From positions 22,258,001-22,322,000 of the forward strand of contig CM119374.1 in assembly GCA_051294905.1 (NCBI GenBank): a stretch of 64,000 nucleotides of DNA. The letters are read 5' to 3'. Positions 1 through 61,372 of this stretch are shown here, piece after piece; position 1 is the first letter of the stretch; every line of letters starts with the position of its first letter. The translations under genes and the position numbers were made by a program. The notes under the pieces are model-generated. The model did no database searches. It saw only the letters and a list, made by a program, of their open reading frames with translations, and was not told where the DNA came from. The stretch is from Botryllus schlosseri (taxonomy: Eukaryota).

Positions 1-383
1 GATGAATGCGGTGCAAATCCAACTTGGCCTTTCACAGAATACTCAAGACGAATGTACGATCTGTTTTGTCGCCGTGATCATCTCGAGAGTGCTTGTTATG
101 AAGAAGTCGAAGACACTGCAAAGAGCTACAACTTCATCCAGGAACCAACCAACGGGAGCTGGAAACACCTCATCGAGACACTGGATTCGAGTCACATGCA
201 TTTCCGCGATCTCACAAAGTCGTGCATACAAGTTGCGCTGTTCGATCGCTTGGATGGCGGGCCTGGTAGATTCCATGAAGTTGTAGAGCCGTTCGCCCCG
301 TTCTGCGGACTCCAGTGGCAGGGCTACGATTACAACACGGCGCAATATCGCGATGTCTCTCCGTGGACAGGCATGAGTATATG
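1..383 (+). CDS. Ectodomain-GPCR copy 1, exon 1 (5'-truncated by window edge): C-terminal half of the Cys-rich ectodomain
   Basis: Frame 1 is open from base 1 (DECGANPTWPFTEYSRRMYDLFC...GVSPWTGMSIW-type sequence) and aligns with ORFs 6762, 44059 and 60850. Donor TG|GTACGT at 383/384 splits the Trp codon. Confidence 0.9.
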
Positions 384-526
384 GTACGTAAAGTGCAGTT
401 ATGAAGTAACCAAGGATTATACTCGGAGATTTGAGAATTGTCCGTGAGATCCTCAAGAGCTTATATTACAAAATGAACCGAGCCGCCAGAATATACATTG
501 TTTGGTGAATTATATCCTGTCGGACT

Positions 527-969
527 TAGGGTTGCATTTAAAACAAACGGTGTTTTGAAACACTTTGTTCAAAACATGTTTTAAACAGTGTTTCAAACAA
601 AGGCCCTTAAAAAATTTGAGATTTTTTAAGTTGTAAAATTATGTCATAATTGTGTAAATACTTTCCAAAAAACATGCACCGCGAGCCTACGGACAATTGC
701 CGCCCGATATGGCCGACGTATATCGATATGGGATGGTTGGAACCCTCGAAATTGTCGGTTCAACATTAATACTACAGATATTTCGTCAAACGAGCTACAT
801 TTACCCTAGATTTTTAATAGTCAATGTCAACCACTACGACGTCAGAATTGAAAATTCGTGATGTCATGATTTAAAAAAAAAGAAAAAAGAAATAAAAACA
901 AGTTTTAAACAAGGGCCTTGTTTTAAACATGTCTGTTTTAAATTGATTTTTGTTTTAAATGCATCCCTA
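527..969. mobile_element. hAT MITE in intron of copy 1
   Basis: 21-bp TIR TAGGG(T/A)TGCATTTAAAACAAA; perfect 8-bp TSD GTCGGACT (519-526 and 970-977). Confidence 0.92.
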
Positions 970-1235
970 GTCGGACTCATTTCCGTTATTAGACTTTTTC
1001 ACATCTTGTAATTTTATAATCATCCCGTAAGCATATTTCGTACATGTACCCGACATAGGATATAAGCCCTATGTGCAATATGTGCAACAGGCATTACCAT
1101 ATATTTCTTCGGGGCCACGAGACAAAAAGTTATAGACTACCCAACCATTTGTGGCTTCTACACGTTATTCATAACTACTTGTCAATATCATACTAGCGCT
1201 CTGTTTTTATTAGGGTATTTATCCAGTCCCGAATG

Positions 1236-1813
1236 CAGGGTTGTAACAATGTCACAAGGTTCCGAGTCACAAGTCAATCTCCCTTTTATAGTTTTGACTC
1301 GAGTCAAGTCGAGTCATTTTTAATTCACCACCGAATCAAGTCATAGTCCAAGCCAGTGAGTAGAGGGTCGAGTCCGAGTCATAGGGTTGTTACCCGAGTC
1401 CGAGTCAAAGTCATTGTCTTCACTGTTAAGTTTTGAGTTCAATCCTGTCCAATCCACTTTCTTCAGCTCTGCTCGAGGTATATAGAATGACTCGCATTCA
1501 TAATTTTTAAATTTTACTCAGTCTTAACAGTTTCTGGTCCTATTTTTAATAACCAGGACTGATTGACAAAATACCAATAATGTGGTGATTTTACTATTCT
1601 TCGAAGTTACAATGAAATGTGTGTCTTGGCCGTCCTAGTCTCGAGTCATATGACTTGCTTCGATTAATGGACAACCACACGAGTACAAGTCGAGTCAATA
1701 TCCAAATTGACTCGAGTCGAGTCGAGTCATTTAACGCAGTTGAAAAATTACTCGAGTCAAATCGAGTCACCTAAAATCGTGACTCGAGTCGGACTCTAGT
1801 CATCACAGCCCTG
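1236..1813. mobile_element. hAT MITE with GACTCGAGTC subterminal repeats, in intron of copy 1
   Basis: CAGGGTTG...CAGCCCTG ends; TSD CCCGAATG/TCCGAATG (7/8 match). Confidence 0.85.
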
Positions 1814-1891
1814 TCCGAATGCCAACATTCGATTCGACACAATAATTTTAACACACTATCGAATTCATAATGTAATTTTCTATTTTTCTAG

Positions 1892-3383
1892 GTGCCGTTC
1901 AAGCATAATAATATGCGTCCTCGTGATGGCGATAGCGGGGACCGCGACAATACTTTCCAACATCCTGATTCTGGCTGTATTTGGAACATCAGAAAGATTA
2001 CGGAATAGCCAGGCAGTTTATAAAATGTCCTTGGCCGCCGCCGACTTGATGGTGGGGTTGGTAGTTTGGCCGAATATGATTGTACTGCAATATCTGACCT
2101 TCTGGCAACCACGCGGCATGGGACCGATGATCAGAAATCCTTACCGTGAAACGAAGGATATGACACCGTACGATAACGCAAGCTTGGTGTACCGGTACGG
2201 CGGAGGCGTGTTCAGCAATATATTTCCGGATGAATATGTGCGCACAATGGGATTCTGCACCATGCTCGGTCTTATGGTGTCGATATACACTCTCATGGTG
2301 GCCAGTTTTGACCGTTTCTATGCTGTATTCAAGCCGCTTAGGTATAACCGCTTTAACGCAAAGCGACAAGCGATCATTCTTTGTGCAATTTTGTGGATCA
2401 TTTCGGTAATAGTGTGCGTATTGCCAACTTTTGTTCCTGGCTTAGTATACCAGGTGATGTCATCGATTTTGATAAATATGGAAGGATTGCCAGCGCTTGT
2501 ATTTCTCTTCGTCGCATTGTTGCTGCCACTGGTGATCACTTGGATTGTTACGTCACTCACATTTCACATGTCGCGACAACATGCCAGAGCACGCGAAAAA
2601 ATTGTGTCCGCCATATCTAGCAGCTCTCAATCATTGGAAAGGAGGCTCGCAAAAACCTTATCAATTATGGTAGGGGTATTCACTCTATCCTTGTTACCGG
2701 TAATATGCTGTACCTTAGCGGGCTTCATATCATCGAATACCGTATGGGAGCAGCCCAGAAACCTGAGCATCAGCGCTGCCACCGTATACACTACGAGTGA
2801 ATACCTGGCAATCATAATTTTGACGAGTAATAGCTTGTGGAATTGTATCATCTACAGCTTGAGAACCAGAGGCTTTCGAGAGGCGGCAGCATCCATCATG
2901 CAAGATATGGGCGAAATGTCGGGCTTTAGAAAGCTACGTCAAGGTGTTGCTAACGTGATCGATGGTGCGAGACGCGTTAGTCTTTCAACTATGATGAACA
3001 TGAGACGCTTCAGTACCCCTGATTCATCAGACTCTCGCAAAAAAAGCGTTACGTCTCTGACAGCTACGAGCAAATTCTCGGACACATCTAGTGCACGACC
3101 GAGCATGGACATTGGAGATTCGTCTGTGTTTGCAGCTTCCTCGACTGATAACACCGCCAATTCCAGATACACGAAATCCACGACAAAAGTATCGAAGACA
3201 AGTTCGGGAGTGGAAGCCAGAGCAGGGCGTAAAAAAGCTTTGAAGAAAGAAGAGAGTGAAGAATACGCGGGCGAGGACTCGACGTTTGGATCGTTTGCCA
3301 TAAATGCAGGAACTGATAGGTTGTTCGAGTCGGTAATGGAAAATGTACCGGAAGAGATCGAGATTGTTGACAGTGATGTATAG
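1892..3383 (+). CDS. Ectodomain-GPCR copy 1, exon 2: rhodopsin-class 7TM domain plus long Ser/Thr-rich C-tail
   Basis: Acceptor TTTTTCTAG|G at 1891/1892 gives in-frame W-C-R-S-S-I-I-I-C-V-L-V-M-A-I. Seven hydrophobic segments with SN (TM1), LAAAD (TM2), DRF (TM3), W (TM4), LP (TM5), LLP (TM6) and NSLWNCIIY (TM7). Stop at 3381-3383. Confidence 0.93.
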
Positions 3384-3606
3384 AAGTATAAGGAACGATT
3401 TACTTTCATTATGGCTAAATTTGTCAGGGGTTGCAGATAACAACTTCTGTGTTAGGCCGACGCATGCCCGAGTGTTATTTGTACGATGGAAGACATACAT
3501 ATTCGCGTGTTGGTTATCTGCCGTAGTGATATATGATCATGAGCTCATCGCACAGTCGATTATCGCGTATGTCGGATGGTTATAAGGATGTTCTGTAGTG
3601 TATACG

Positions 3607-3949
3607 TAGGGTTACCATGCGTCCTCTTTGTAAAGGATTTGTCCTCTTTGATTTTTTTGAAAGTGTCCTCGGAGGACGCTCAAATGTCCTGTTTTTTGAG
3701 ATTTGTCCTCTTTTTGAAAATTTCAGTTAAATAGAGGGGGAAATCCGACTGAGATACAGTAAATCAGCACTGAAGTGACGCTGCGGCGGCTATTTCGGGA
3801 ACTGAGCCGGAAAGTTGACCATTTATTTTAGTCGATCGACCACGAAATGGGAAAAATTTACCATTTTTTCAGGATTTCCATCCGGTATCGCAAGTTTGAA
3901 ATTCTGAAAAAGTGTCCTTTTTTCAGATCTCCAAAATATAGTAACCTTA
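3607..3949. mobile_element. hAT-type MITE, TAGGGTTACCA family
   Basis: Imperfect TIR and AGGAC/GTCCT subterminal repeats; related to 45135-45587 and 26876-27312. No clear TSD. Confidence 0.7.
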
Positions 3950-5037
3950 TATAAGTGGATTTTCTATTCACATATGCGACCCGACTAAATGTGTTCTCCC
4001 ATGTCATAATGATGCTGATAATATTATGCACTCATTTAGTCATTCAATTTATTCATATCGTACAAGTTTCGATTGGAATATCGTTGAGGTAATACGGCCC
4101 GTTTGCGTTTGGTTTGGTGGTACAGTGCATGGATTGTATTCGTGTTTATGATATGTACCTTACACTTATGGTTGGTTGCGTGGTCGGTTTTACATGTAAG
4201 ATGTGTTGCCTATGATCATTTCATGTATGTTGCCTATCGACAACACTGCAGTCCGTCTGAAATATAGGTATTTCTAACAGCGATTAGTATAGGTATAAGC
4301 TACGAAATCAATACGAAGTAGAACATACCACCACAGGCGTGATCAGGATGAGAATTTGTGAGGGGGCAGATTTATTTTACCGATGGCGTGTCATGTCAGA
4401 TTCATTAGGCGAAGACTTTGATAAGATTGGTGTGACAAGTCGAGCTCACTCAGTACAGTGAATCTAAATCCACCCGAGACAATATTAACCAATTCCAATA
4501 TGTCCAGCTGTTACGGACTAAATTAGAAATTTAAGTGAAACATACGTACAAATTATGCATATTTGAATATGGAAAAAGAACAAATTAGTGCGTTAAATGC
4601 GCATCGTTATCATAGCTTAACCAGTATAGCACACATCCAAGATGATATCTGGTTTGATAGGACCGGAAATTACTGCACTGACTACAGCGGATGCAACGAT
4701 AGCACCCAAAATCCGACTTCACAATTACTAAGAATATCAACAAATCATGCTGCTTCATGGTAAACTATTTCTATATCACGAGGGATATCATACTAGGAAT
4801 CCGAAAAGTTTTCGAGTTATAATAAATGTACAGACCTACTGTGGATGTCGTGATGAAATTTAATATGCGGTTTGTGCGGTACTTGATTATTACCCTGGTT
4901 CCCACGTATGCTGCCATTCCTGACATTGAAGGTCGTCCCCCATAATAACTCCAATCTTAATTTTAATCTAAACTGATATGTCAGAATCAACAGCTACTTA
5001 TATTGCAATAAAATGAACACACGCCCATGCGCTAGAT

Positions 5038-5433
5038 CAGTGGTTCCCAACGTGGGCGATATCGCCCACCAGTGGGCGACTTTGAGCCACAAAGGGGCGG
5101 AAATACCAATGGGGGCGATAGGGGGCGAAAATGTTAGAATGTCCGGTGAGATTTATTTAATTATCACTGCCAAAAATTGCACGTCAAGACGGCTTACTCT
5201 GCATATACCGCGAAATAAAGTGAATTCAACGGAAAGTAGACACGTAAAGCGGTTTTTCGAGCACCTATCACCTCGTAAAATGGCCTTTTTTAAAATAAAT
5301 TCACCAACGATCAGATTTAGGTGGATAAATTTCACGTTTATATGTCCTTTTTCGGATCTGTAAATACAGGGGGCGAAAATTTGTTTCGAGCTTGATAAGG
5401 GGGCGATGCGTCGAGAAAGGTTGGGACCCACCG
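5038..5433 (+). mobile_element. hAT (Charlie-like) MITE, deletion derivative of the 33131-34391 element
   Basis: CAGTGGTTCCCAAC TIR; TSD CGCTAGAT/CGCTAGAC; both ends match 33131-34391 in reverse orientation. Confidence 0.88.
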
Positions 5434-6821
5434 CGCTAGACGAATTTCGTGGCTTATCAGTAGGAATGTGACTGTCAGTGCCTAGCTACAGCGATACGAC
5501 TATGACTAATGACTATATGCAAAACAATAAACCCGCGTGTTTTGTCGAAATTAGTACTAACCAATACGGAGAGGACATATCTCAAATTACAAATTCGCCG
5601 CAAATTTGATTCTATCACAACCCCAAAGCGAAGATTTAAAATGATAAGTTTTCCAAAGCACAGATGCAACCAATCACGTATCCGTGCCGTCGGTCCGTAT
5701 GCACATGGCCTATTGCATGAACCATTGAGATTCCGTGCACTAATAGCGTGGCCCACGCACTAAATTGAGTGACTGCGACTTATCTATCTTGGAAAAGCAA
5801 ACGTGGCAACACATTCTACCATATCCAAGCACTAGTAACATGCAAACATCATATGGTGCTATCACATAAACTGGTGATATTTTAGGTTTCATCTCACGAC
5901 AACGAAGAAGCCGCTTGGTAGTCAGTTTCGCTCTAAAGCCATCGGAAATTCAACGCAATAAGAGCCGACGTTTTATGTAGAAGCGGGTTTGACCGACTGC
6001 TCATGCCAAAGTAATATCTCCACTCTGCAAAGTCGTCAATGGATTGAATGGCAGGGTGGCACGAACATGTAACGACGCTGTCGTGTGAGTAATAACAAAT
6101 AACAGTTGGGACTGGTATGATACATTACATTGTTTAATATTTTTCTTTTTTTTTTGTCTGTATATCTTTCTAGATAATACACATCTTGCTATCGACATAT
6201 GTCATGCATTGTGTTTTGGTCAGTTTTGTGTGCAATTAATCATCGCTACAAGATGATCAGCTTTAATCGCACAATGAGTCATTTATCTGATGATACTAAA
6301 CACAATATTCTATTGAACCACATGGAAGTTGGTAATTGCCTGAGAAAAGGGAGATCACTGGGAAACCTTAGTGATCTTTCGAATTGAGTAAGTATAATTT
6401 CTCATGTCGTGAAATCGTCTGTACCTCCTCAACGTAAATTGAAATATATAAGTTCTACTGCATTTTTTATCGTAAATTACTATACTTCTCTTCTAATGTC
6501 GAGAAAGCAAATGTTTCATTTAGACTTCATATCTAATTTAGAATATTATCATATCCTAGTAAATTTTGGCCGATCTTCGATGCATTTGATTGGAGTCCAG
6601 AATGACTGACTGTGGAACTTACCTTTTTACCTTGCTCACTGCAAAGCGCGTTGCTGTTATTAATTTAGAAGATGTTATGGATTTGGTCACCTTTCTGATG
6701 CGTTGCAGAGCTTAGAACTGATTTTAATACCGCATACTTTACTAAGTTGCTATAGAGCAGCATGATCCGTCAAAAGCAGAAGGGCGGGGAGAAAGAAGAG
6801 AGAAGAATACATGGAAGGTCA

Positions 6822-7654
6822 ATGTCAAAGTTTCTTCAGATTATTACGCTCACAATGATGCTACTTTCCTACACCAATGTTTGTAAATCGGATGTTAGCG
6901 CTAGAAATGAGACAACGCCGAAGTCCATGGAAGCCATGAATCGGCTTGTAGCAACAACAGCAGGAAACCATACGAGAATCGCATCCGTAATCCTCTCAGT
7001 CCATCAGAGTCTGAACATGAATAAGTTGACGAATTCGTCGACCAAAGAACAGAAAACAGAAAGAATTATATCAACTAACAATCACTCCGATGAAGTGGAA
7101 TTAGACAGAAAAGTTTGCATGCACTTTCCAACGCCTAAAATTGAAAACAAAGAACAATGCTGTCAACTTCTTTACAAGACGTACGCAAACGTTTGGATCA
7201 ACAGGGGACGCTACCTCGTTGTTATGCTGGAACGCTTGAAAAGATGGCGTTGCAAGGAATTTGATGATGAATGCAAACGCCCGACTTGGTCTTTTAGCGA
7301 GTACACCAGGCGTATGTACGATCTGTTTTGCAACAGGAATATAGTTGAAACGACCTGCTACGCCGATATCGCTCAAGTCGCTCAGCGGTATCAATTTGTG
7401 AACGAGTTAATCATCCCCGGCGCGATGACTTGGCAAGTTTTGATTGAGAAGCTAGACTCAAGCGCGATGAAACTCGAAGACTTGGCGACACCGTGCGTAC
7501 AAGCTGCCTTATTCGACCGAGCTGACGGTGGGGTGGGGCGGTTCCACGAAATTATCGAGCCATACGCACCATTTTGCGGTCTGCAGTGGCACGGATACGA
7601 TTTTCACACGGCGCAATTTCGCGGAGTATCGCCGTGGACCGGAATGCCTTTGTG
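6822..7654 (+). pseudogene. Ectodomain-GPCR copy 2, exon 1: signal peptide, stalk and Cys-rich ectodomain (open frame; upstream in-frame ATG at 6762)
   Basis: MSKFLQIITLTMMLLSYTNVCKS signal-like segment, four N-x-S/T sequons in the stalk, 9 Cys in the domain. Donor TG|GTAAGC at 7654/7655. Gene is disabled or truncated by a stop in exon 2. Confidence 0.85.
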
Positions 7655-7953
7655 GTAAGCCTGGGTCATATTCTCGAATGATTACACTACGGTAATTTAC
7701 ATTCTCTGTTTATCTATTAAATAATCCTTCTTCTTGGCTTTATTAAATAGAAACAACGATAATGCACATCTCACACTGTTAGGTTAAAAAAAGGTGCGCT
7801 TTACAAGCCGGAAAGATTTATCACGTTACAATGACCCATACTTCAACCGTAGAAAATATTCAAATATGAATTGCTGTATTTTCGGATATTATATATTGGG
7901 AAACTTAGCCTTGGCGCTATGACTTCTGTCAGATATATATGAATCTATTTCAG

Positions 7954-9148
7954 GTGCCGATACAGCATCATGGCATGCATTGCCTTCATGGGAGTAGCAT
8001 GCATCACAACGATCCTTGGTAACATATTCATTCTGAGCGTATTCGGGACTACCGCTAAACTGCGAGACACCCAAGGCGTTTATAAAATATGTCTCGCTCT
8101 CGCCGATTTAATGATAGGACTCGCAGTGTGGCCGAATATGATTATATTGTAATATCTCACGTTCTTCAAGCCGCGACACATGGGAGAGCTCATAAAACGA
8201 CCGTATAGTCAAACTGCCAATATGACGCCTTACGACAATAGAGATCTGGTTTACCGCTACAGCGGTGGTGAATTTGGAGACGTTTACGATCAGGATTCCG
8301 TGAGTGCAATGGGATTTTTCTCACTTCTAAGCACGATTTTATCGATTTACATACTCATGTTTGCGAGCGTGGACCGATTCTGGGCCGTGTATCGACCGCT
8401 AACGTACAACCCATACGTTGCCAAACGTCGTGCTGTCAGGCTGAGCGGATTGTTATGGTTCGTGTCTGTAGTGATCGGTCTACTCCCCGTCTTCACACCT
8501 GGATTTTCGTATAAAGTCATGAGCTCTAATTTCATATTCGCTAATGGAAAACCAGCATTCATAGTGTCGGCTGGGACTGTCTTTATCCCGCTGGTAGTGA
8601 TGTGGATTCTTACCGGGATGACATATTACGCGTGTCGGAAACATAGCCTCGCGCGAAGAAAATTAATTACTTGTCAATTCGATTCCCGGAGGGATTTGGA
8701 GACTAGACTTGCTGGCACGCTATCGATAATGGTGATGGCATTTTCCATATCGTTAGTGCCGGTGATTTGCATTACCACTGTGTGGTTTACGCCTGCTATC
8801 ACAAACTGGGAGCAGCCGCGAACGCTGAGAATAAAGAATGCGACGGCGTACACTACCAGCGAATACTTGGCGATTATCGTGTTGACAAGTAACAGCTTGT
8901 GGAATTTCTTCATATACAACTGGCGGGTAAAGGAATTTCGGAATGCTGCTATTCGAATGTTTCGGGAGAGGTTCAAACCGTACGTATTGCGCCGCAGAGG
9001 CGCAAAAGTCTACCGTAATACGAAGGGTACTCGCGGGAAGAACGCTACTAACGTGGCGCTTTCAGATAACGCGGGTAACCATCAACACCCTGCGTATGAG
9101 ACGGGAATTGGACGACGGGTCTCTACCGTTACGACCCCAGCTACTTAG
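7954..9148 (+). pseudogene. Ectodomain-GPCR copy 2, exon 2: 7TM with in-frame TAA after TM2 and a shortened C-tail
   Basis: Acceptor TATTTCAG|G at 7953/7954 gives WCRYSIMACIAF. ORFs 7970-8152 and 8180-9148 are one frame separated by TAA at 8150-8152, where paralogs have CAA (Gln). Confidence 0.88.
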
Positions 9149-29300: not shown

Positions 29301-32300
29301 ATGGTGATAATTGGAATATATTCACAAGACACAGCTTAGGAAAACTGAATTTCATGGAGGCTTTGCGTGCCTAATTCCCTTGCGGCTTTATGGTGAGCGT
29401 GTGTCGGTATGCGAGCCTTGACTTTAATTGTAATGGGTTCGATGTGGATAAGAGCAATAAGCATGAATAAAATACAGTAGATTTAGATGTTTAGCCGCAT
29501 TTAAAGTGGGTTTTTATTTTCCATTGGGGTGGGTAATTTTAAGGGACTCCGTGTGTTCCAGCAGCTTTAAATCTATAATGAGTGCATACTGCACGAATCT
29601 GCTGGGATTTAGACGAAATATGGATAGGATTAGATATTTAGATTCATAAATAGGCTATGTATGTTCAATAAGGATCATTCATTGTATGTGAAAACATCCA
29701 ATGCACTCAAATTCAATCACAAGGCTTTCATAAGATTATAATGCCAACTGTGGCTTCACGTTAATTATATATTCTACAATGATTTCTTGCATTTGCCTGT
29801 TTGGTGTAACGAAATACAAGTGGCTTCTGTAAGATATATACAGCCAGAGATCAATATGTAATAGTGTCCACTGTCCATTGATATATAGAGCTTCACACAA
29901 CCAATTCGGTGTCGTGTTTGAATGTGTGAGGTACGACTGAGATTGTGATGTAATATATTGTATATCTATATCACCAATCATCCGATAGAGTGAAGGATAA
30001 CTCCTGTTACATCCATCAAACCAATATTTTGTAATTCACAAAAGAATTGTGTATTCACTAGATGCAAAAGCACTCCATTTTCCGTACAAGCTCTCGCCAG
30101 TAATCAATCAAAGTCTGGAATCTCTTCAAACCTAAATAATTAAGTATACACGTACGATATCGGTGAGATTTCGTTATTTTTCAACGTTCCCCAAGTGTAC
30201 GTTTTAACTACATTCGGTTCAACGCCACAGAGTATCATTATCGATATACCTATTACAAAGGTTTTCGTGAATTAGAGAAATTGTGGCCGTGAAATGAATT
30301 GCGGAAATGCAGAATTCCTCACATACTATGATATCCTCAGAGTGAGGCATGAGTTGTCGAGAATAAGACATACCTTTATATTCTATACCCCAACAGATGT
30401 GTTGCATAACATATGTAAATCTAACAGTTACCAAACGAGATAACATCTCGCGATCGTAACAGATATCAGCGAAATTGCATAAACTTGAGAATCCTTTTTC
30501 CTAGTTTTCCCCGGGATATTGCCAAAATCTACAATTGTGACGTTTGCTGTTGTAACCGTGTGCATTGTGCGTCACCTGTAACCATATACCCCCGCAATTT
30601 TGAACATATTTGTATCGCTGGGGTTGTATTATGCTAAAATGGAAGGGTGTCACAAAATAGACGTGGTCCCCGTTTGCTTTGTCATTGTATCGCAAATCTC
30701 AGTTAGTGTAACTATAACCACCTCTTTACCAAACTTTATATCATTAGTAGGGCAATTTTTTGCAACTTTTGTAACTCTTTTTTACATTCCGGCAGATTCC
30801 TATAGATATTCGGAATTTATGTACCATAATGTTTTACGTTATTAGTAGGGATTTTATATTGCAACTTTTTGCGACACGTAGAGTAGCTTTTCCATTTTAA
30901 TCAAACATGATGTTTGAAACCACAAAGGGTAAATTTGGATTTGAATTGAAAGGAAACCGGCCTTGGTGAAGATTTTGGTCTCATGTTAAATTTCTCTAAC
31001 TGGTTTCAGGATTTCGATTTGGACCTGAAACATTTCATTTTCTTGAATTTCAATGTCATATTTTAGTTGATTTGATTACGATTAGGTTAGGATTGTGATT
31101 CAAAAACACGAAAATTCAGACCACCACCACTGGTTTCCTTATATTGGTGTAGGTCGCGTAACCATTACCATGAGACTGCAGTATATGGTATGTGTTGGGA
31201 TAATAATACAGGTATCCGGGATGAAAGGAGTGTAGGGTATTAGGATTCTGGTGGATACTTATTCTGGCGTGACTTCAGTAGCTTTCAGGCTCATTATGAC
31301 ATCGTTAACATAGATGACATCGCAATATCCTGGTCGGTATTCCAGAGAAAATGATAGATTTTTCATTGAGTAAACAGCGGGAATTACAGCACCGGGCATA
31401 GCGTAAACACGCCTGCCGTATTAACATTTTGTTCAGGTGTAAACTGATGAGTTTCCTGCTACACATAAACATGTTCTCGAGTATCTTCATAATTGCGGCA
31501 ATGGCTGTCAACAGATATCAAGTCGTCGTTTCGGGTAAGTTTGATCCTGCGTATAGATCAATTTACCATCAGCAGTTGAATTCGCGAGATAACATAAGTG
31601 ATTCATGATATTCCACGCGTCTCTTGCAATGTGATTCGTCGTCACTGGTGTAGTTTTCGGTATGAAATATACATAGGCAATTCCATAACTGTCGCACTTA
31701 AGGCCCAAACGAGATTGAACATTATTTCGCCTCAATATTCTAAGTCAAAATGTTATACAGTGGGATGTTTTAATAACGGCGACGGGGCTAATTAGGCGTC
31801 AGAAATGGCTACTGTTTGATGAATTTCTGCTAAAGGTCGATATACTTATATGTGGAAAGTCATTTGTGAAACAGCGAAGTTTGTTCTCTCAAGGGTAACT
31901 ATGTAGATATGGTACATCCGACATCTTTCCATCAGGCTGGCCATAGTCGTATGTAAAATTCGAAGACACGCCAGTGCAAAGTCCGCACAAACATACGCGC
32001 TGGTCTTGGTATAATATGCTTTCATCAATATGAAATCAGAAATAAATAATTCATATATTCTGAAACTTTGATGTATATACTGGGAGATTTATAATGGCAT
32101 ATAACTATCGTTATTTGTACCTCAACAATATATATATGCGCAGGCGCGTTGCGGAACACAGCCAAGCCAAAGAGAAAATGGGACACGATACGGTATTGCG
32201 TCATAATTTGGCTTACATCGTGCGTGCTCTCTACGCATACGCTATTTCTACGAAAAACCATGCCGCGCAAAAATCGGAACCTATGCAGGTAAGGTGTGCG

Positions 32301-39560: not shown

Positions 39561-41031
39561 TCATGTTGAACCCTCCGCATGCCTCGAGGTTTCCATATAT
39601 TCAGTCAAGTTACTCATAACGGATTGGTAGAGGTCTGCAGTATTAGCGCTGATGACAAACGATCCGAATGCCGTGCTACGTCGTCCACGTGTCTCCGGCA
39701 CACTAGTCACAGTAGGTGACTGATACCATCTTGTGTTACACGATTTTGGGAGTCGTCGTCTGTCATACTTCGACTGCGCATCGTCATCACGCGCTATTTC
39801 ACAAACTGAATCCTCGGTGATCATACGGTCCGAGGTACAAGGTCCGTCTACGTGCGACTCTGCCATCTCCAAGTAGTCACTGTGCGGCTCAGACGCGGGA
39901 AGTTGGCGGCTAGTCGAGTTATTTGAACGTACCACGTTAATAGCGATCTTCCGATAACCACCATGCGTGTTATTGGAGGGATTTGCGACACCGCGGCGCA
40001 GTATGCACGGTGTGAACCTCTCCCGAAACATCCTAAGTGCAGCCTTCCGAAATTCTTTCACCCGCCAATTGTAGATGAAGAAATTCCATAAGCTGTTACT
40101 TGCTAACATGATAATCGCCATGTATTGGCTTGTGGTGTACGCCGCCGCACGACTTCGACTTAGCATCCATGGCCGTTGCCAATGTGTGACAGCAGGGGTA
40201 AAACTCACGACTGTGGTGCCAATTACTGGCACCAACGATACCGAAAAGGCCATCACCATCATTGATAACGTGCTAGCAAGTCTATAGTCGAAATCCCGCC
40301 GGGAAATTGAAGGACATGTAATTATACTTCTTCTCGCGATAGCGTGTTTCCGACACATGTAGTATGTCATTCCGTTTAGGATCCACATCGTGACCAGTGG
40401 TATAAGGAGAGTTCCAGACACTATGAATGCTGCGTCTCCTTCAGCGAATATGAAATTAGAGCTTGTGACTTTATACGAGAACCCTGGGATGAAAATGGGG
40501 AGTAGACACAACACTATGCACACGAACCATAACAAAACGTTTAATCTGACGGCGCGGCGTTTGGCGATGTATGGGTTGTATGCTAGCGGTCTGTACACAG
40601 CCCAAAATCGATCTACGCTCGCAGACATGAGTATGAAAATCGACAATATAACGCCTGGTAGAGAGAAAAATCCCATTGCGATCACAAAGTGATTATCGTA
40701 AATTTCTCCACGTTCACCACCGCTGTAGCGATAAACCAAATCTGCATTGTCGTAAGGTGTCATATTAGCAGTTCGTATGTACGGCCGCATGATGACCGCT
40801 CCCATGTGTCTCGGCTTGAGGAACGTGAGATATTGTAATATAATCATATTCGGCCACAGCACGACTCCTATCATTAGATCGGCGAACGCGAGGGATATTC
40901 TGTAAACGCCTTGGGTGTTTCGCAGTTTAGCTGTGGTCCCGAATACGCAGATAATGAATACGTTTCCAAGGATCGTTGTGATGCATGCCGCTATCATGAA
41001 GGCAATGCATGCGATGATGCTGTGTCGGCAC
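39561..41031 (-). CDS. Ectodomain-GPCR copy 3, exon 2: intact 7TM plus C-tail (spliced product 772 aa)
   Basis: Acceptor GTATTTTAG|G at 41032/41031 gives WCRHSIIACIAF. Motifs GN, LAFAD, DRF, SLVP and NSLWNFFIY. Exon lengths 848+1471 nt = 773 codons including the stop. Confidence 0.93.
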
Positions 41032-41502
41032 CTAAAATACATTCATATGTGTCTAACATGAGTCAGTCCATTACGACTTCGTTCCCCGTTATATTGCGCA
41101 TAATTTATTCGTTCTAGAGCAGTGCTGGCAATTCGTGACTGGATTCGAATTGGAACCACGGGTTGAATCCTAACTTACCTTTCGTAATGATCAACGTAAG
41201 AAGTGCACTTGGCTTAACAGCAGGTTAAATTTTGATGTGGGAATACTGTAACCTGGTTCGATAGACGGAAATCATGTATTCAATCTATTTCCACCATAGA
41301 ACGGGGTTGCAATCAGTCCAATAGCACTCTCAGGTACAAGATATTGCTCACACACCCATAGTATCATCAGCGACAATGAACCAAATACGTCAGCTACGGA
41401 ATAAAAATGGAAAATATTGGCCTGGTGCAAATGACCAAAGTAGTTCACAAACAAAATTAATACCACAAACAACAGCAACTGCAATTCATATGAGAGTATA
41501 TC

Positions 41503-42771
41503 CCAGGGGTTCTCAACTTTCCTTGCATAACGGGCCGCACCTTAACAGCAAAAACCGCTGCGGGCCGCAGAACATTATTACCGTATATTTGTGGACTGCT
41601 CACTTATTTAGGCTAATATAGCCTATTAACCAGTCGTATATGGGCATTTAGTACATTTGTATGCATTCTACAGCATTAATGGACACTATGGACAGCGTTC
41701 GTAAGCTTTCAGTTGCTGTTTTTAGTGAGATTATGTCATCTTCCAACGGAACAAGTAAATCCCTTCATGAAGCGTGCATTGCATTCGTTCCCAAGTCGGT
41801 ATGTCCAGTGTGCACCTTCAAACCCTTGCACCACACAACCGAACTCTCTGTTTCAATGCGTGAGCGAGCAAGTATACAATTACGGTAACTTTTTCGTTGC
41901 AGAGGCCATTGTCACTTTGAGCTCTCAGTGATATGATAAGAAGTCTCATGGCCGGGGTAATTTCTGAGCAAACCAATCAACCCTTATCATTCCCTTCCAT
42001 GGCTGATGCCCTGCACCAATAGTTACAGAAGTCAGCTTTGTCAAGATGATGTTGTTTACTAGTCCCCTCCCCCCACGTTTTGCCGGCCAGAATTGCGTCT
42101 ACGAATATATCGACTGCGATAGAATACTCCAGTACAATTAGCGTTGCAATGTCCGTGGATTTTGTCCAATGCTAGGTTAAAGTAGTCTACGCGGCAACGT
42201 GTTTCAAAACATGCGACAAAAGATTAACTAGCATTGCTGTTACTCTTCTTGTCACGGTTGAATCGCACAACTGCAGCTTCGAAATTTGTTAGATGAAGTT
42301 GTCCTTGCTGCTAAATTTCGGAAACAGCGGAGATTCGTACAGTATAGTAACGTTTTGTTGAAAACACACCTTTTCCAGCAGATTTCATGGGTTTAGCGAT
42401 ATACCAAGCAATTTTGAACCATGCGTCTTTAACGTCGTCGGCAATCTCGAAATGCCTCAAAATATGGATTGCTGGGCATGAGACCTGGCTAGCAACACTT
42501 TTTTCTAAGATCAGGTGATATGTATAACTCCGGACGGAACTGTCCGAAAACCTATTCAAAACAATAAGAATCTAAACTCGGCCATCTATCAAGAAACCAG
42601 AACACATTGAAGAATGAGAATAAATCAAACGAAATAGAGACGGTGCGATAAGAGAGCTTAAGTGCTAAATTATTATGTAACAATACTGTGCCGGTAGTGA
42701 TTGCGATCATATTGAAAGATCTCGCGGGCCGCAGAAGAAGCGTTTGCGGGCCGCGGGTTGAGAACCCCTGG
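41503..42771. mobile_element. hAT-type MITE in intron of copy 3
   Basis: 15-bp perfect inverted repeat CCAGGGGTTCTCAAC and GGGCCGC subterminal repeats; TSD unclear. Confidence 0.8.
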
Positions 42772-43211
42772 ATCCTATGGGCCAGTCATGGAATCTGGCT
42801 ACGTGTAACATCTTTTGGGGTGGTATGCGTCAACGCTCTTCGAGCTATTCCGGGATGGGACACCTTTCCACCTTTACACAACAGCTAAGCACTGAAATGC
42901 TGATGATTACAAAAGGTCAAGACTCTTTCCCAGTCCTAATATCCCGCCGTTACTAGTATCGCCGCGGCTGACTAAGAGCTGCAAGCTTAAATGTGCCCTA
43001 TAGTCGCGGTGTCTGGTAGGCCTACGTACGCGCTACACATGACCCGGTTGAAGTGCACTGGAATACGTACTCTTTTCGCTATCATTGTGTCAAGCGCATG
43101 ATCGTAGTTTATAGTAAATCCCTAACACAACTTATGCTTGATAGATAAAAAAAAAGTTATATACTGTAAGTTAACGTTTTCTATCCATTCGAGAATATTC
43201 TATGCTCTTAC

Positions 43212-44059
43212 CAGGAAGGCATCCCCATCCAAGGCGACACTCCGCGATATTGCGCTGTTTGCAAATCATATCCTTGCCACTGTAGACCGCAAAATGGTGC
43301 GTACGGTTCGATAATTTCGTGGAACCGTCCGACTCCCCCATCGCTTCGATCGAATAAAGCCGCTTGTACGCATGATTTAACCAAGTCTTCAAGTTCCATC
43401 GCGCTTGAGTTTAGCTTCTCAATCAAAACCATCCAAGTCATGGCGCCTGGAAAGAGTGATTCGTTCACAAATTGATATCGTCGAGCGACGTGTACGATAT
43501 CGGCGTAACATGCCGTTTCAACTTTACTTCGGTTGCAAAACAGATCGTACATACGCTTGGTGTATTCGCTAAAAGACCAAGTCGGGCGTTTGCACTCATC
43601 TTCAAATTCCTTGCAACGCCATCTATTCAAGCGTTCCAACATGACAACGAGATAGCGTCCACCGTTGTTCCAATCGTTTACGTACGTCTTGTAAACATGT
43701 TGACAACACTTGTCTTTGTAATCAATATTCGGCGTTGGAAAGTATGTGCAGACGTTTCCATCAAATTCCAATTCCTCTTGGTAATGAGTCTTCGATTTAT
43801 TTCGCTCTGTTGTCGGTTCTCTGGTCGATGAATTCATGAACTCCTTCGAGTTAGGACTTTGATGGGTTGACAGGAATGAGGTTGCGATTTGCGCATGGCT
43901 TCCTGCTCGCGCTGCAACAAGCCGACTGATGTCTTCCACGGACTTTGTTTTTGACGCCTTTTTTGTGCTAACATCCGATTTACAAGCAATAATGTGTGAA
44001 AGTACAATCATTGTGACCGCTATAAGCTGGTGGAACCCTGACAACGATCTTCCGTGCAT
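43212..44059 (-). CDS. Ectodomain-GPCR copy 3, exon 1: signal peptide, stalk and Cys-rich ectodomain
   Basis: ORF 43208-44059 begins MHGRSLSGFHQLIAVTMIVLSHIIACKS. Donor TG|GTAAGA at 43212/43211. Confidence 0.9.
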
Positions 44060-44405
44060 CTTCTCTCATCTATACCTTCCCGCCCCTCTGGTTTTGTCGT
44101 ACTCGTCTGCAGCAGCGCCACATGATGTGTGGTGTTAACATTAGCTCCGAGTTCTTCAACACACCAGAAAGGTAACCGGATTCTCGATATCGTATTAATA
44201 CCAGCAATAATACACTTTGCAGTAAGGGGGCTACAAGGCAAGAGGATATTTTAAAGACAAAAAGTGCGCCACGTCCAGCTAAATTGAATCCTGAATATAC
44301 ATTCATGGAGAAATAAATTCGATATGGTGTCTTACAAAAGCCTTGAAGTGGGCCGTGCTACAAGTCTGCAGTTACGGAATCTAGTATTACGATTTCACTG
44401 AACAT

Positions 44406-52066: not shown

Positions 52067-54499
52067 TCACGTTCAACCCTCTGCATGCTTTGAGGTTTCC
52101 ATATATTCAGTGAAGTTACTCATAACTGATTGGTACAGGTCTGCAGTATTAGCACAGATGACAAACGATCCGAATGCCGTGCTACGTCGACCACGTGTCT
52201 GTGGCACATTAGTCGCTGTGGGTGACTGGTGCCATCTTGTATTACACGATTTCGGTAGTCGTCGTCTGTCATACTACGAATGCGAATCGTCATCACACGC
52301 TATTTCACAAACTGAATCCTTGCTGAATATGTGGTCCGATATTCAAGGTCCGTCTAAGAGCGACTCTGCCATCCCTACGTAGTCGCTGTACGGCTCCGAC
52401 ACGGGAAGTTGGGGGCTGGTCGAGTTAATTGAACATACCACGTTCATAGCGATCTTCCGATTACCACCCTGCACGTGATTGGATGGGACTTGTAACACCG
52501 CGGCGCAGTATGCACGGCTTGAACCTCTGCCGAAACATTCGAAGTGCAGCCTTCCGAAATTCTTTCACTCGCCAATTGTAGATGAAGAAATTCCATAAAC
52601 TATTAGGGGAGATGTGGTACCGATGGATCAAAAATTGCAAAATGATCCCTGGCCCTCAAATCTTCAGCCGAGAATAGCAGATCTTTTGCTGTCTCAACAC
52701 TTCGATACAAGCTCTACCTATCGCAGACATTTACATGAATATCCGCCTTTTCAAAAAATATTTATAAACGTTTAAAATTTGTTGCTCGAACGTGTCATCG
52801 GTCCCCACCCGGTGGGTCCAAAGGCACACGACCATGGGACCTATGAGACATACGCTCAAAAACTCAAATTTGTTCACTTGTTTTGTTGTGTACTATAAGC
52901 TAAGCTACAGCAAGTCAATGAAGAATGTTTCGTCGTGACCTTCAAAAATAAATTAGATTACATCAACTCAAATATTGGCATAAAATCTTGTTTTGATTTA
53001 CGCTAAAATTTACAAAATTAATGCCACATACATATTACCCGCAAATCGAGATTTTGACTTTCAAATACCTCGTAATAGCGATAAAACACCACAGGTAACT
53101 ATGATTTACAGCCTATATATATGTAGGCGAGTTTCTGTTATTAAGTGATTAGTTGGTCCATCTATTTTGCTTGATTTGTTCATGGTACCATAGGTCCCCC
53201 ACCCCATAAATATTGTAATTGACTTGAATATAGTCCACTCGAGGACGGTATTGATTAAAAAAATATGTGCCATTATATAGCCTGATACAAGCCCTATACT
53301 TCACATCAAAAATTATGGCGGGTTTGTTAGTCTGAAAGGTGATATAGAAAAATGCAAATGTCGATCCAAATTTACTTTACACCCCCTAAAACGTAAATCA
53401 TTCGTCACAGACCCCATAACTCACGCAGGTCGAATTTTTTTGCATGTGAGGAAAGATTCTGCCAGCATGCAATTGTAGACAAATTCACGGAATGTAATCA
53501 TGGAATTATCATGGAGAATTTTTCAAGTATTTTCGGTTCCAGTGATCCATCGGTACCACATCTCCCCTACTTGTTAACATGAAAAACGCGACGTACTCGC
53601 TTGTAGTGTTCGCCGCTGCACTTTTTGTATTAATCGTCTGCGGTCGTTGCCAATTGGTGCCAGCAGGTGTATAGATCAGCACGACATTGCAAATCGCCGG
53701 CACCACCGATACCGAAAATGCCACAACCATCATCGATAGCGTGCGAGCAAGTGTGTTATCCGAATCCTGTCGGGAATCTGAGGGACTAATTATCCTTCTT
53801 CGCGCTATAGCGTGTTTCCGATATACGAAATATGTCGTTGCTGTTAGGATCCATACGATGACCAGCGGGATAATGGGAGTTACCAACGCTATCCATTTCG
53901 CGTTTCCACTGACGGATATGAAATTAGAGCTCACGACTTTATACGAGCTTCCTGGGATGACAACAGGAAGTAGACATAGCACTATGCACACGAACCATAA
54001 CGATACGTTTACTCTTTCGGCGCGACGTTTGGCAACGTATGGGTTGTATTCTAGCGGTCTGGACACGGCCCTAAATCGATCTACGCTCGCGAACATCAGT
54101 ATGAAAATAGACAATATTATGCCTGATACAGAGAAAAATCCCATTGCGATCACAAAGTGATTAGCGTAAATTTCTCCACGTTCACCAGCGCTGTAGCGGT
54201 AAACCAAATCTCCATTGTCGTAAGGAGTCATATTGGCAGTCATTCTATACGGCCGCTTGATGACTGCTCCCATGTGCCTCGGCTTGAAGAACGTGAGATA
54301 TTGTAATATAATCATATTCGGCCATACCACGACTCCTATCAATAAATCGGCAAAAGCGAGGGACATTTTATAAACGCCCTGGGCATCTCGCAGTTTAGCT
54401 GTAGTTCCGAATACGCACAGAATGAGTATGTTACCGAAGATCGATGTGATGCATGCTACTCCCATGAAGGCAATGCCTGTTATGATGCTGTGTCGACAC
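52067..54499 (-). pseudogene. Ectodomain-GPCR copy 4, exon 2: 7TM split in TM7 by a 962-bp MITE, plus a +1 frameshift in the tail
   Basis: Acceptor ATATTTTTAG|G at 54500/54499 gives WCRHSIITGIAF. Homology to copy 3 stops at LTS (53570), resumes at NSLWNFFIY (52605) and runs to ~52067. One extra base near 52484 relative to copy 3. Confidence 0.92.
52606..53567. mobile_element. 962-bp MITE with TA duplication (Tc1/mariner-superfamily-like) inserted in TM7 of copy 4
   Basis: Perfect 25-bp TIR GGGGAGATGTGGTACCGATGGATCA; TA on both sides (52604-5 and 53568-9). Removing the element and one TA restores LTSNSLWN. Confidence 0.95.
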
Positions 54500-59948: not shown

Positions 59949-60796
59949 CAGGAAGGCATCCCGGTCCATGGCGATACTTCGCGAAATTGCGCCGTGTGGA
60001 AATCATACCCGTGCCACTGTAGACCGCAAAATGGTGTGTACGGCTCGATAATCTCGTGGAACCGCCCGACACCCCCGTCGCGTCGATCGAATAAGGCAGT
60101 TTGTACGCATGATTTCACCAAGTCCTCAAAAGCCATCGCGCTTGAGTCTAGCTTCTCAATCAAAACCCGTCAAGTCATCACTCCCGAAATGAAAGACTCA
60201 TTAACAAATTGATATCGTCGAGCGACGTCTGTGATATCGCCGTAACATGCCGTCTCAACTTTACTTCTGTTGCAAAACAAATCGTAGATTCGCCCCGTGT
60301 ATTCACTAAATGACCAAGTCGGGCGTTTGCATTCATCATCAAATTCCTTGCAACGCCATCTTTTCAAGCGTTCCAAAATGACAACGAGATAGCGTCCCCT
60401 GTTGATCCAATCGTTTGCGTACGTCTCGTAAAGATGTCGGCAACAGTTGTCTTTGTATTTGTTATTCGGCGTTGGAAAGTTTGTGCAAACGTTTCCATCA
60501 AATTCCAATCCATGGGGGTTATTGGTCGTTGATTTATTTCGCTCCGTTGTCTTTTCTCTGGTCGATGATTTCGTGAACTTCTTCGAACCCGGACTTAGAG
60601 GGTTTGCGAAGTGTGCGGTTGCGTGTCGCACATGGTAATCTACTGGCGTTACGACAACTCGATTCATGTTTTCCGTGGACGTTGGTGCTGACTCATTTCT
60701 AGTGCTAACATCCGATTTACAAACATGGATGCACGAAAGTAATATCGTTGTGACCGCTATAATCTGGTGGAACTCTGACAACGCCCTTCCACGCAT
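59949..60796 (-). pseudogene. Ectodomain-GPCR copy 4, exon 1, with TGG>TGA nonsense codon (upstream in-frame ATG at 60850)
   Basis: ORFs 60170-60850 and 59945-60163 are one frame. TGA at 60172-60170 replaces the W of MTW seen in paralogs. Donor TG|GTGAGC at 59949/59948. Confidence 0.9.
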
Positions 60797-61372
60797 TCTT
60801 CCCTCTTCTACCTCCCCGTCGCTCTGGTTTTGTCGGATAATGCTGTTCATTAGTAAGACAACATTATATGTGGTATTAAAATTAGTTTTGAGTTTTAAAA
60901 CTTAACAGAGAGGAAACCAAATTCTCGACACCTTATTATTGACAACAACAACGCTCTAAGCAGAAAGGAGGGTTACATGGCAATAGGATATATTAAAAAC
61001 GAAAACTGAGTTATGGGTGGAAAAAGTGAATATTACATTCACAGTGAATTAGGTTCGTATATTTTCGGCAGACGCTCGTTGGGATCAATCGCGGAAACGT
61101 ATGCCTGGCCATAAGCTAAATCTAAAACCAAGTAATAGCGCGGGCCGCACAACGCCATTCGAACATGGCACTTCTTCGTGGGACTAAGAATTTTTCTGTG
61201 TGGGTCGTAGGTGTTCAACAAGAGAATATTTCAGTTGAGTACTTTTGGGCTGCCACACAATGCATTTCATAAGAGATTCATTCTACAAAATGTTGGCTAA
61301 TTGATTATAATCAGGGTGGCTACTTCGATGTTGTTTCTTAGATTCAAAAGGTATATTATAAATGGTATATCA

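Follow-up and report, generated by a model that had tools for sequence, protein, structure and literature searches.

The 64,000-nucleotide stretch of Botryllus schlosseri DNA analysed here (contig CM119374.1; the window) very probably holds a tandem cluster of four paralogs from a tunicate-specific family of class A GPCRs, the Ciona members of which have been cloned as receptors for short, Ciona-specific 'LF' neuropeptides. The receptors add new members to a family whose Ciona representatives were cloned and deorphanised before, and as comparative genomics the cluster itself is ordinary. What has been under-reported is the ectodomain, which is highly conserved, confidently modelled and disulfide-rich, and which is present on every long member of a family that responds to peptides in the nanomolar range.

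All four copies are built from two exons, one for the ectodomain and one for the 7TM core, separated by a GT..AG intron in phase 2 that splits a Trp codon (Table 1). The donors read TG/GTACGT at 383 in copy 1, TG/GTAAGC at 7654 in copy 2, TG/GTAAGA at 43212 in copy 3 and TG/GTGAGC at 59949 in copy 4 (the slash marks the exon end), while the acceptors at 1892, 7954, 41031 and 54499 consist of a pyrimidine-rich tract and AG, followed by G TGC/TGT CG. Splicing brings W-C-R into frame at all four junctions. The ORF pairs, splice sites and junctions thus lie where the preliminary description had placed them, and the intron lengths of copies 1 to 4 (1508, 299, 2180 and 5449 nt) match its range of 299-5449 nt with fixed position and phase. 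Copies 1 and 3 are intact, copy 1 being cut by the window edge, beyond which the 5' end of its exon 1 lies; copies 2 and 4 are pseudogene-like. Copy 2 is probably a pseudogene or a null allele. Copy 4 is, to judge from its sequence, a pseudogene: its TM7 coding sequence is interrupted by an insertion of about 950 bp (it breaks off at 53569 and resumes at 52613), and its tail contains a frameshift and stops. With two of four copies broken, the earlier proposal that the family has expanded in this lineage and evolves by birth and death fits well. The spliced translation of copy 3 is intact, with 772 aa and no stop, and has the signal peptide, Cys domain, 7TM and tail previously assigned to it, but the 'stalk' does not link domain and membrane: it is a disordered N-terminal leader rich in Ser, Thr and Asn, distal to the Cys domain, which in the full-length model directly enters TM1. 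The window contains no tRNA genes.

Table 1. Features of the four receptor copies in the window.
Feature	Position	Strand	Remarks
Copy 1 exon 1	1..383	+	3' part of ectodomain exon, ending in TG of the split Trp codon; ectodomain (ECD) HMM E 3.9e-47
Copy 1 intron	384..1891	+	1508 nt, GTACGT...TTCTAG, phase 2
Copy 1 exon 2	1892..3383	+	Intact; last Trp base, junction Cys, 7TM, long tail with conserved C-terminal motif; Pfam 7tm_1 E 1.5e-25
Copy 2 exon 1	6762..7654	+	Signal peptide, Ser/Thr-rich leader, 10-Cys ectodomain; HMM E 5e-68
Copy 2 exon 2	7954..9148	+	7TM with in-frame TAA at 8150-8152 (CAA in copy 3); tail truncated, without C-terminal motif
Copy 3 exon 1	43212..44059	-	Met at 44059, signal peptide, leader, Cys domain (aa about 101-283); AF2 pLDDT 95
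Copy 3 intron	41032..43211	-	2180 nt; high-copy repeat at about 41460-42850
Copy 3 exon 2	39561..41031	-	7TM and tail; Pfam 7tm_1 E 5.5e-19; covered by RNA-like runs X1 and X6
Copy 4 exon 1	59949..60850	-	TGA in place of Trp at 60170-60172
Copy 4 exon 2 remnants	52076..54499	-	7TM 54499-53569; TM7 and tail remnants 52613-52076

The fusion of ectodomain and 7TM is real, since ascidian gene models and cloned cDNAs show the same domain directly entering TM1, and they support the gene model of the preliminary description, in which splicing joins an exon for the ectodomain to one for a class A 7TM. The named long relatives are all ascidian proteins. RefSeq has models from Styela, Ciona and Clavelina, and GenBank has protein entries from Phallusia and Botryllus. 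Each of the 33 long relatives carries 7tm_1, and the ectodomain is kept in every long family member. Two Styela RefSeq models (P0001 and P0002) share both the domain and the SPW..W/CR junction with the window copies, at 44-48% identity (E 9e-66 and 2e-60); copy 1 is the window copy closest to P0001 (LOC120335855), with 55% identity over 543 columns. A 3160-nt Logan contig encodes domain and 7TM in a single 712-aa ORF, and the two also share one frame in the Phallusia entries, which we take to be mRNA-derived. Neither tblastn nor a profile HMM revealed an ectodomain exon in the 10 kb upstream of P0003 (locus L001), a related ORF with the 7TM only.

Among the Ciona receptors, Ci-LF-2-R (P0175, BBC53702.1) matches the window proteins in the ectodomain (E 2e-28, 30% identity) as well as in the 7TM (E 3e-52, 33% identity); the entry is presumably the cDNA deposited with the paper that deorphanised this receptor. 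The ECD HMM recovers Ci-LF-2-R (A0A1W5BPN7), Ci-LF-5/6-R (A0A1W2WNF0) and Ci-LF-8-R (A0A1W2W8Y7) at E <= 1e-61, these entries being identified as Ci-LF-Rs by their UniRef names. These three have been cloned and deorphanised and are activated by nanomolar LF peptides (Shiraishi 2019, PMC6475428, a study that used an Sf9 / G-alpha-q16 calcium assay). They belong to a clade confined to urochordates, whose closest neighbours are the cannabinoid, adenosine and adrenergic receptors, with 21-26% identity to the nearest receptors (PMC6475428), a placement with which our PDB and Swiss-Prot matches of the 7TM agree. The Ci-LF-Rs share with the window copies a Cys-rich ectodomain joined directly to a 7TM core of the same type, the DRF and WN.xIY motifs, a long ECL1, restriction to tunicates and the occurrence of tandem paralogs. 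However, the window copies are only 30-33% identical to them and fall into a Styela-type subclade apart; they have ten Cys, whereas the three Ci-LF-Rs and most of the family add a WCG/C(M/L/I)P Cys pair; and the tail of Ci-LF-2-R, the one Ci-LF-R tail compared, does not have the C-terminal motif DSTFGSFAI..DRLF.SVMEN of copies 1 and 3. In an ML tree of 41 rows with an unresolved backbone, the window copies group with Styela in one starred clade, and the Ci-LF-Rs fall into a separate starred clade of Ciona, Phallusia and Clavelina sequences. The window copies thus appear to belong to the same superfamily as the Ci-LF-Rs and to a different subfamily, and because identity to Ci-LF-2-R is only 30-33%, their ligand class is extrapolated. 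The preliminary description had named a characterised family with this architecture as grounds for its refutation; in part, the Ci-LF-2, -5/6 and -8 receptors, with exactly this architecture, are such a family, but the ectodomain is apparently still undescribed.

Indeed, the main text of the deorphanisation paper (PMC6475428) contains no description of the ectodomain, which has apparently never been described before. Exon 1 encodes a signal peptide and the leader, followed by a disulfide-rich domain about 190 aa long, which AF2 predicts to be mostly helical with one beta-hairpin (pLDDT 95, pTM 0.89). The AlphaFold model proposed in the preliminary description accordingly gives a confident ectodomain, a helix of which continues into TM1 without a linker when the full-length protein is modelled. 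Among the paralogs, the ECD has a dN/dS of 0.21-0.27, compared with 0.28-0.40 in the 7TM and about 1 in the leader, so that the strongest constraint in the gene lies on the ectodomain. That the domain had been called unrecognised is borne out by every library searched. Pfam returned nothing with E below 0.04 for two ectodomains, sequence searches of PDB and Swiss-Prot no relative, and Foldseek against PDB only matches with E > 1. A wide VIA-align search gave a best Z of 4.3 over 56 residues, and the ESM Atlas gave TM <= 0.38 by shape and a score < 0.9, with low recognition, by features. The AFDB clusters returned only the family itself and one partial match, E4YX06, a 480-aa GPCR. Apart from tunicate GPCRs, the PDB, AFDB and ESM Atlas libraries gave the domain no structural counterpart. 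A likeness of the stretch DLFCNRS..ETACY to GLP-1R/HRM (phmmer E 0.26 over 49 residues) comes with neither a Pfam HRM nor a structural match and is attributed to chance; class B ECDs were absent among the Foldseek and VIA matches of the ectodomain.

The 7TM core encoded by exon 2, which lies between the junction Cys and a long tail, is of the alpha-group (MECA/amine-like) and has an ECL1 of about 40 residues; 7tm_1 (PF00001) scores 69.1 bits in copy 3 and 90.6 bits in copy 1 against a gathering cut-off of 30.5. Where canonical class A receptors have the micro-switches D/ERY, CWxP and NPxxY, the copy 3 translation has DRF, LVP without the Trp in TM6, and in TM7 NSLWNFFIY, with another residue at the Pro position of NPxxY. 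The consensus of the relatives' alignment has the same variant forms, with WN.xIY in place of NPxxY. Not one Cys is invariant or nearly invariant in the 7TM region of the 33 long relatives, and a conserved TM3-ECL2 disulfide is therefore unlikely, a disulfide that CB1 and S1P receptors likewise are not known to have. The nearest solved or reviewed 7TMs are those of the MECA/amine cluster (CB1, adenosine A2A, 5-HT2, GPR50), at E about 1e-8 by sequence and about 1e-11 by Foldseek, but identity to the window 7TM is only 14-20% in the fold-search alignments, and these receptors have no folded ectodomain: all Swiss-Prot alignments begin at query residue >= 287, at the junction or later. Automatic names on relatives ('thyrotropin receptor-like', 'cannabinoid receptor', 'histamine H2', 'dopamine D1B', 'S1P3-like', LGR) reflect only generic class A similarity.

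Other receptors place a rhodopsin-class 7TM behind a folded, disulfide-rich ectodomain, namely the LGR/glycoprotein-hormone and relaxin receptors, which have LRRs with or without LDLa, and the LDLa-repeat GPCRs of Ciona (Kamesh 2008, PMC2396169). A lineage-specific expansion in ascidians is a further point of likeness. The window ectodomain, however, has no LRR or LDLa match and is helical rather than a solenoid, the 7TM is alpha-group-like and not delta-group or LGR-like, and the domain abuts TM1 with no hinge region. Class B1 receptors (secretin-type, HRM) are no more than functional analogues, in that a peptide receptor carries an ectodomain stabilised by disulfides; the window ectodomain has no Pfam HRM or structural match, and the 7TM is class A.

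What the ectodomain does can be framed as a tentative proposal: it may be a tunicate-born domain with a fold absent from PDB, joined by exon fusion to an intronless MECA-like class A receptor as a peptide-recognition module. On the extracellular face, probably together with ECL1, it would form a ligand-recognition vestibule, and by analogy with the Ci-LF-Rs in Ciona, copies 1 and 3 would be receptors for short secreted peptides of their own species. That the ectodomain 'captures the ligand', in the words of the preliminary description, is something we infer. If it joins in ligand recognition, it would show that a class A receptor had gained a folded ectodomain of its own, which is rare, and would amount to an independent, class-B-like, two-module mode of peptide sensing inside class A. 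It would also account for the failure of ligand pairing by homology and for the difficult expression of some receptors. Such a role is directly testable, since nanomolar agonists and clones exist for the Ciona members.

Perhaps, although we would not give this even chances, the ectodomain is not the primary binder and instead serves as a structural cap, assists folding or trafficking, or has an autoregulatory role as a tethered inverse agonist or agonist; the peptide would then bind within the 7TM pocket, the usual site in class A peptide receptors. In MECA-type receptors without the TM3-ECL2 disulfide the N-terminus acts as a lid, and linker-free joining to TM1 suits a lid better than a flexible capture domain of the class B style. 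The LF-R agonists are short (PMC6475428), such that a class A pocket could hold them, and several Ciona GPCRs failed to express, for which swaps of the N-terminal region were suggested (PMC6475428). However, no other region is as constrained among the paralogs as the ectodomain, and it occurs in every long member, with which a specific recognition role is at least equally compatible.

It is rather improbable that the subclade in the window has left peptide signalling and consists of chemosensory receptors whose ectodomain samples waterborne external cues. A tandem expansion in which pseudogenes are frequent (two of the four window copies), the position of the window copies outside the deorphanised clade and weak Srx/Srsx Pfam matches would suit such receptors. 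But any class A receptor may give Srx matches, endogenous neuropeptides are the ligands of those members for which a ligand is known, and an ECD dN/dS of about 0.2 signals conservation, where the binding sites of chemoreceptors typically show diversifying selection.

That each ORF pair represents separate genes, a secreted Cys-rich protein and an intronless GPCR with coincidental splice signals, can hardly be entertained: an in-frame ATG does open the copy 3 exon-2 ORF 11 nt upstream of the acceptor, and no contig bridging 43212 to 41031 was recovered among the Logan contigs for copy 3, but in copies 1 and 2 no ORF containing TM1 starts with an ATG, and the four paralogs agree in donor, acceptor and phase. 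The cloned Ciona receptor entries, the Phallusia entries and the 712-aa-ORF contig have domain and 7TM in one frame, and the cDNAs of the homologues already contradict separate genes. Moreover, of the 78 short ORFs in other assemblies that consist of exon 1 alone, most share the same end position, which, together with cDNA-derived relatives with the same junction, makes the junction more than chance. The Logan contigs are too fragmented because of polymorphism or paralogs; one contig from run X2 extends about 35 nt beyond the donor, and those of run X7 are unspliced across both boundaries, as in DNA or pre-mRNA. The check for junction reads proposed earlier gave, for copy 3, exon-only coverage in the two RNA-like runs X1 and X6, in which both exons are covered at similar depth and the unique stretches of the intron at zero depth.

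Each of the four tandem copies in the window pairs an ectodomain exon (exon 1) with a 7TM exon (exon 2). The preliminary description had read four same-strand pairs, a 'secreted protein' ORF lying upstream of a 7TM ORF and joined to it by an intron that splits a Trp codon, and both the ORF listing and direct reading of the sequence, eukaryotic DNA of ~40% GC, agree with it. TG|GT(A/G)(A/C)G donors end the upstream ORFs at the positions claimed, the acceptors consist of a pyrimidine-rich tract and then "AG|G TG(C/T) CG.", the intron is in phase 2 in all four copies, and Trp-Cys-Arg is regenerated at every junction. Copy 3 is open throughout, and copy 1, cut by the left edge of the window, is open over the remainder. 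An ectodomain profile HMM finds no ectodomain exon in the window beyond these four. Exon 2 matches Pfam 7tm_1 (E 5.5e-19 in copy 3 and 1.5e-25 in copy 1), and exon 1 has no Pfam match.

Positions of junctions, lesions and other features discussed in the text
Feature	Position	Strand	Detail
Copy 1 junction	donor 383, acceptor 1892		intron 1508 nt
Copy 2 junction	donor 7654, acceptor 7954		intron 299 nt
Copy 3 junction	donor 43212, acceptor 41031	-	intron 2180 nt
Copy 4 junction	donor 59949, acceptor 54499		intron 5449 nt
Copy 3 coding sequence	44059-43212 joined to 41031-39561	-	772 aa without stop
Unique stretches of copy 3 intron	41114-41287, 42854-43201		
High-copy repeat, inside copy 3 intron	41460-42850		
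High-copy repeat, just upstream of copy 3	44246-44400		
In-frame TAA, copy 2	8150-8152		CAA at copy 3 equivalent
TGA in place of Trp, copy 4	60170-60172		
Insertion in TM7 coding sequence, copy 4	52614-53568	-	~950 bp; coding breaks at 53569, resumes 52613
C-terminal motif, copy 1 tail	~3290-3380		
C-terminal motif, copy 3 tail	~39590-39680		
Different class A GPCR exon	32350-32702	+	in ORF 32094-32702; Pfam 7tm_1 E 2.4e-14
P0003, related 7TM ORF	10001-11518 of L001 (ENA contig ERZ25067576:ctg8035)		505 aa

That the two exons form one gene is supported by relatives in which domain and 7TM are joined. A word-indexed search with exon 2 finds two Styela clava RefSeq proteins of 798 and 727 aa (P0001 and P0002), both of which carry the window-type ectodomain at the N-terminus (44-48% identity, E 9e-66 and 2e-60) and the identical junction pattern "SPW..(S/M)..W|CRG". 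An exhaustive HMMER search with the copy 3 ectodomain against 1.84 billion representatives gives 143 matches at E <= 1e-3 (102 at E <= 1e-10), and their lengths are bimodal: those of ~540-730 aa hold the domain at the N-terminus, with 7tm_1 present in 33 of the 33 long matches, and those of ~200-270 aa, with the domain at the C-terminus, are exon-1-only ORFs. In most of the 78 short ORFs the reading frame closes where the junction codon would lie, typically with "...S.WTCMP.R" and a stop, as expected if a gene caller reads on through a donor of the form GTAA or GTGA; the whole family thus conserves the position and phase of the intron. Relatives provide support at the level of transcripts: the Ciona Ci-LF-2 receptor (BBC53702.1), which we take to be a cDNA deposited with the Ci-LF receptor study, Phallusia mammillata CAB3262686 and CAB3262030, presumably mRNA-derived, and a 3160-nt Logan contig that holds a single unbroken 712-aa ORF across domain and 7TM.

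For Botryllus schlosseri itself, sequencing runs were compared with copy 3. In the RNA-like runs X1 and X6, depth is similar on both exons and zero in the unique stretches of the intron. No contig bridges donor and acceptor among the assembled contigs aligned to copy 3. One contig from run X2 extends ~35 nt beyond the donor, and in run X7 coverage is unbroken through both boundaries; this last run looks like DNA or pre-mRNA. The repeat within and beside copy 3 has a depth of 10 to >100x that of the exons in all four sequencing runs, and joints linking its two stretches point to a dispersed element.

The results do not support the idea that this receptor family is new: relatives exist as gene models and are partly deorphanised. 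Searching with Ciona members reaches the UniRef entries for the Ci-LF-2, Ci-LF-5/6 and Ci-LF-8 receptors, and the ectodomain HMM matches all three (E <= 1e-61, from residues ~5-27 to ~216-229). The Ci-LF-2 receptor aligns to the window ectodomain over residues 41-208 (E 2e-28, 30% identity) and, directly thereafter, to the window 7TM (E 3e-52, 33% identity). A family with this architecture, the kind of finding that the preliminary description had named as refuting it, has therefore been characterised in part: the Ci-LF receptors, obtained by cloning from the Ciona CNS, were deorphanised in an Sf9/G-alpha-q16 calcium assay, where their cognate LF peptides had EC50 values of 0.71-5.25 nM, and they fall in a clade confined to urochordates, with Botryllus and Oikopleura sequences among its members, the nearest vertebrate relatives being cannabinoid, adenosine and adrenergic receptors at 21-26% identity (Shiraishi et al., 2019; PMC6475428). 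Our PDB and Swiss-Prot searches agree on the nearest relatives: the best PDB sequence matches of the 7TM are A2A, 5-HT2C and CB1 (E ~1e-8), the best Swiss-Prot structural matches are GPR50, A2A, 5-HT2A, melanopsin and the beta-1 adrenergic receptor, and all these alignments start at or past the junction. The window genes thus add members to the tunicate LF-receptor superfamily. All named long relatives are ascidian (Styela, Ciona, Clavelina, Phallusia, Botryllus), and their public annotation is inconsistent, with conflicting automatic names (cannabinoid, thyrotropin, histamine H2, dopamine D1B, S1P3, "uncharacterized"). Gq-rhodopsin is a further such name, and a Botryllus schlosseri protein with both ectodomain and 7TM (P0048, GenBank ART85726.1) was deposited as 'histamine receptor h2'.

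In a maximum-likelihood tree of 41 full-length rows, the backbone of which is unresolved, the window copies group in one starred clade with Styela P0001, P0002, P0023 and P0025; copy 1 has 55% identity to P0001, and copies 2 and 3 share a long branch. The Ci-LF receptors occupy a separate starred clade with Ciona, Phallusia and Clavelina sequences. Thus, the window genes belong to the LF-receptor superfamily but lie outside the deorphanised subfamily, so that their ligands are a matter of inference. The related 7TM ORF P0003 is 41% identical to the Ci-LF-2 receptor over 55% of its length and is flanked by hAT-type transposase genes. Neither tblastn nor HMM finds an ectodomain exon within 10 kb upstream of it; either its intron exceeds 10 kb or it is a relative without ectodomain.

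What remains new is the ectodomain, which appears to be unannotated, tunicate-restricted and without known structural relative. It had been called unrecognised, and this was borne out: it has no Pfam family and no relative among PDB sequences (best E 0.25). The AlphaFold2 model, built from 88 aligned ectodomains, is of very high confidence (mean pLDDT 95, pTM 0.89) and has ~ten helices and one beta-hairpin. Foldseek against the PDB returns only E > 1 and TM <= 0.31, VIA-align against 48,161 PDB representatives gives at best Z 4.3 over 56 residues, under the tool's noise level for helical proteins, and the ESM Atlas yields TM <= 0.38 by shape and no credible match by features. Failure to find a structural match is no proof that the fold is new. 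Among AFDB clusters, the family members A0A6F9DI97 and F6UX23 match (TM 0.85), as does, in part, the N-terminus of E4YX06, a 480-aa GPCR (TM 0.45, E 0.02) that we take from its accession series to be from Oikopleura; if so, the ectodomain is older than the ascidian-larvacean split. We found no description of the ectodomain in the literature searched. The main text of PMC6475428 does not contain the word "extracellular" and refers to N-terminal regions only as a swap target for better expression. Ciona receptors whose N-termini are unrecognised have been listed under "Other Rhodopsins" and "Unclassified LGR-like" (Kamesh, 2008; PMC2396169), and these may include the family.

The ectodomain alignment has nine conserved Cys columns, and the exon 2 Cys at the junction is the tenth; the window copies have this 10-Cys form. 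Most members carry two extra Cys, one in a WCG and one in a C(M/L/I)P motif. Of 88 sequences, 63 have both, 24 have neither and one is discordant, a pattern that marks a disulfide whose two Cys are gained or lost together. Among copies 2-4, dN/dS is 0.21-0.27 in the ectodomain, 0.28-0.40 in the 7TM, 0.7-1.2 in the N-terminal Ser/Thr-rich leader and ~1 in the tail, so that no other part of the gene is as constrained as the ectodomain. Copies 2 and 4 must each have stayed functional through most of their history. Copy 2 now has a single in-frame stop and a shortened tail, and copy 4 has lost a Trp codon to a stop, carries the insertion in TM7, and has a frameshift and additional stops in its tail. 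Two copies (1 and 3) are thus intact and two pseudogene-like, which supports the birth-and-death evolution proposed for the family.

How the ectodomain might work is suggested by the receptor core. The full-length model of Styela P0001 (pTM 0.68) has a signal peptide, ~70 disordered residues and then a folded domain (pLDDT > 90), the final short helix of which enters TM1 without a linker. The 7TM core carries N1.50, D2.50 and DRF, LVP replaces CWxP in TM6, WN.xIY replaces NPxxY in TM7, and ECL1 is unusually long (~40 residues). Since no Cys is invariant or nearly so at any position past the junction, a conserved TM3-ECL2 disulfide is unlikely. In MECA-type receptors without the ECL2 disulfide, the N-terminus is a lid over the pocket. 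The ectodomain would lie on the extracellular face and, with ECL1, would form a vestibule for recognition of a short peptide. It might instead gate access rather than bind the ligand itself, or it might serve only in folding or export. With the Ciona reagents, these possible roles are directly testable. At the other end of the receptor, the tails of copies 1 and 3 share a motif, DSTFGSFAI.AGTDRLF.SVMEN and then acidic residues, that is common to Styela P0001 and P0002, Phallusia P0047, Clavelina P0110 and the 7TM-only ORF P0003 and absent from copy 2; a putative role in trafficking or effector docking is possible. Between the two pairs of family copies lies an exon from another, different class A GPCR gene, which covers roughly TM4/5 to TM6 and has a canonical CWLP.
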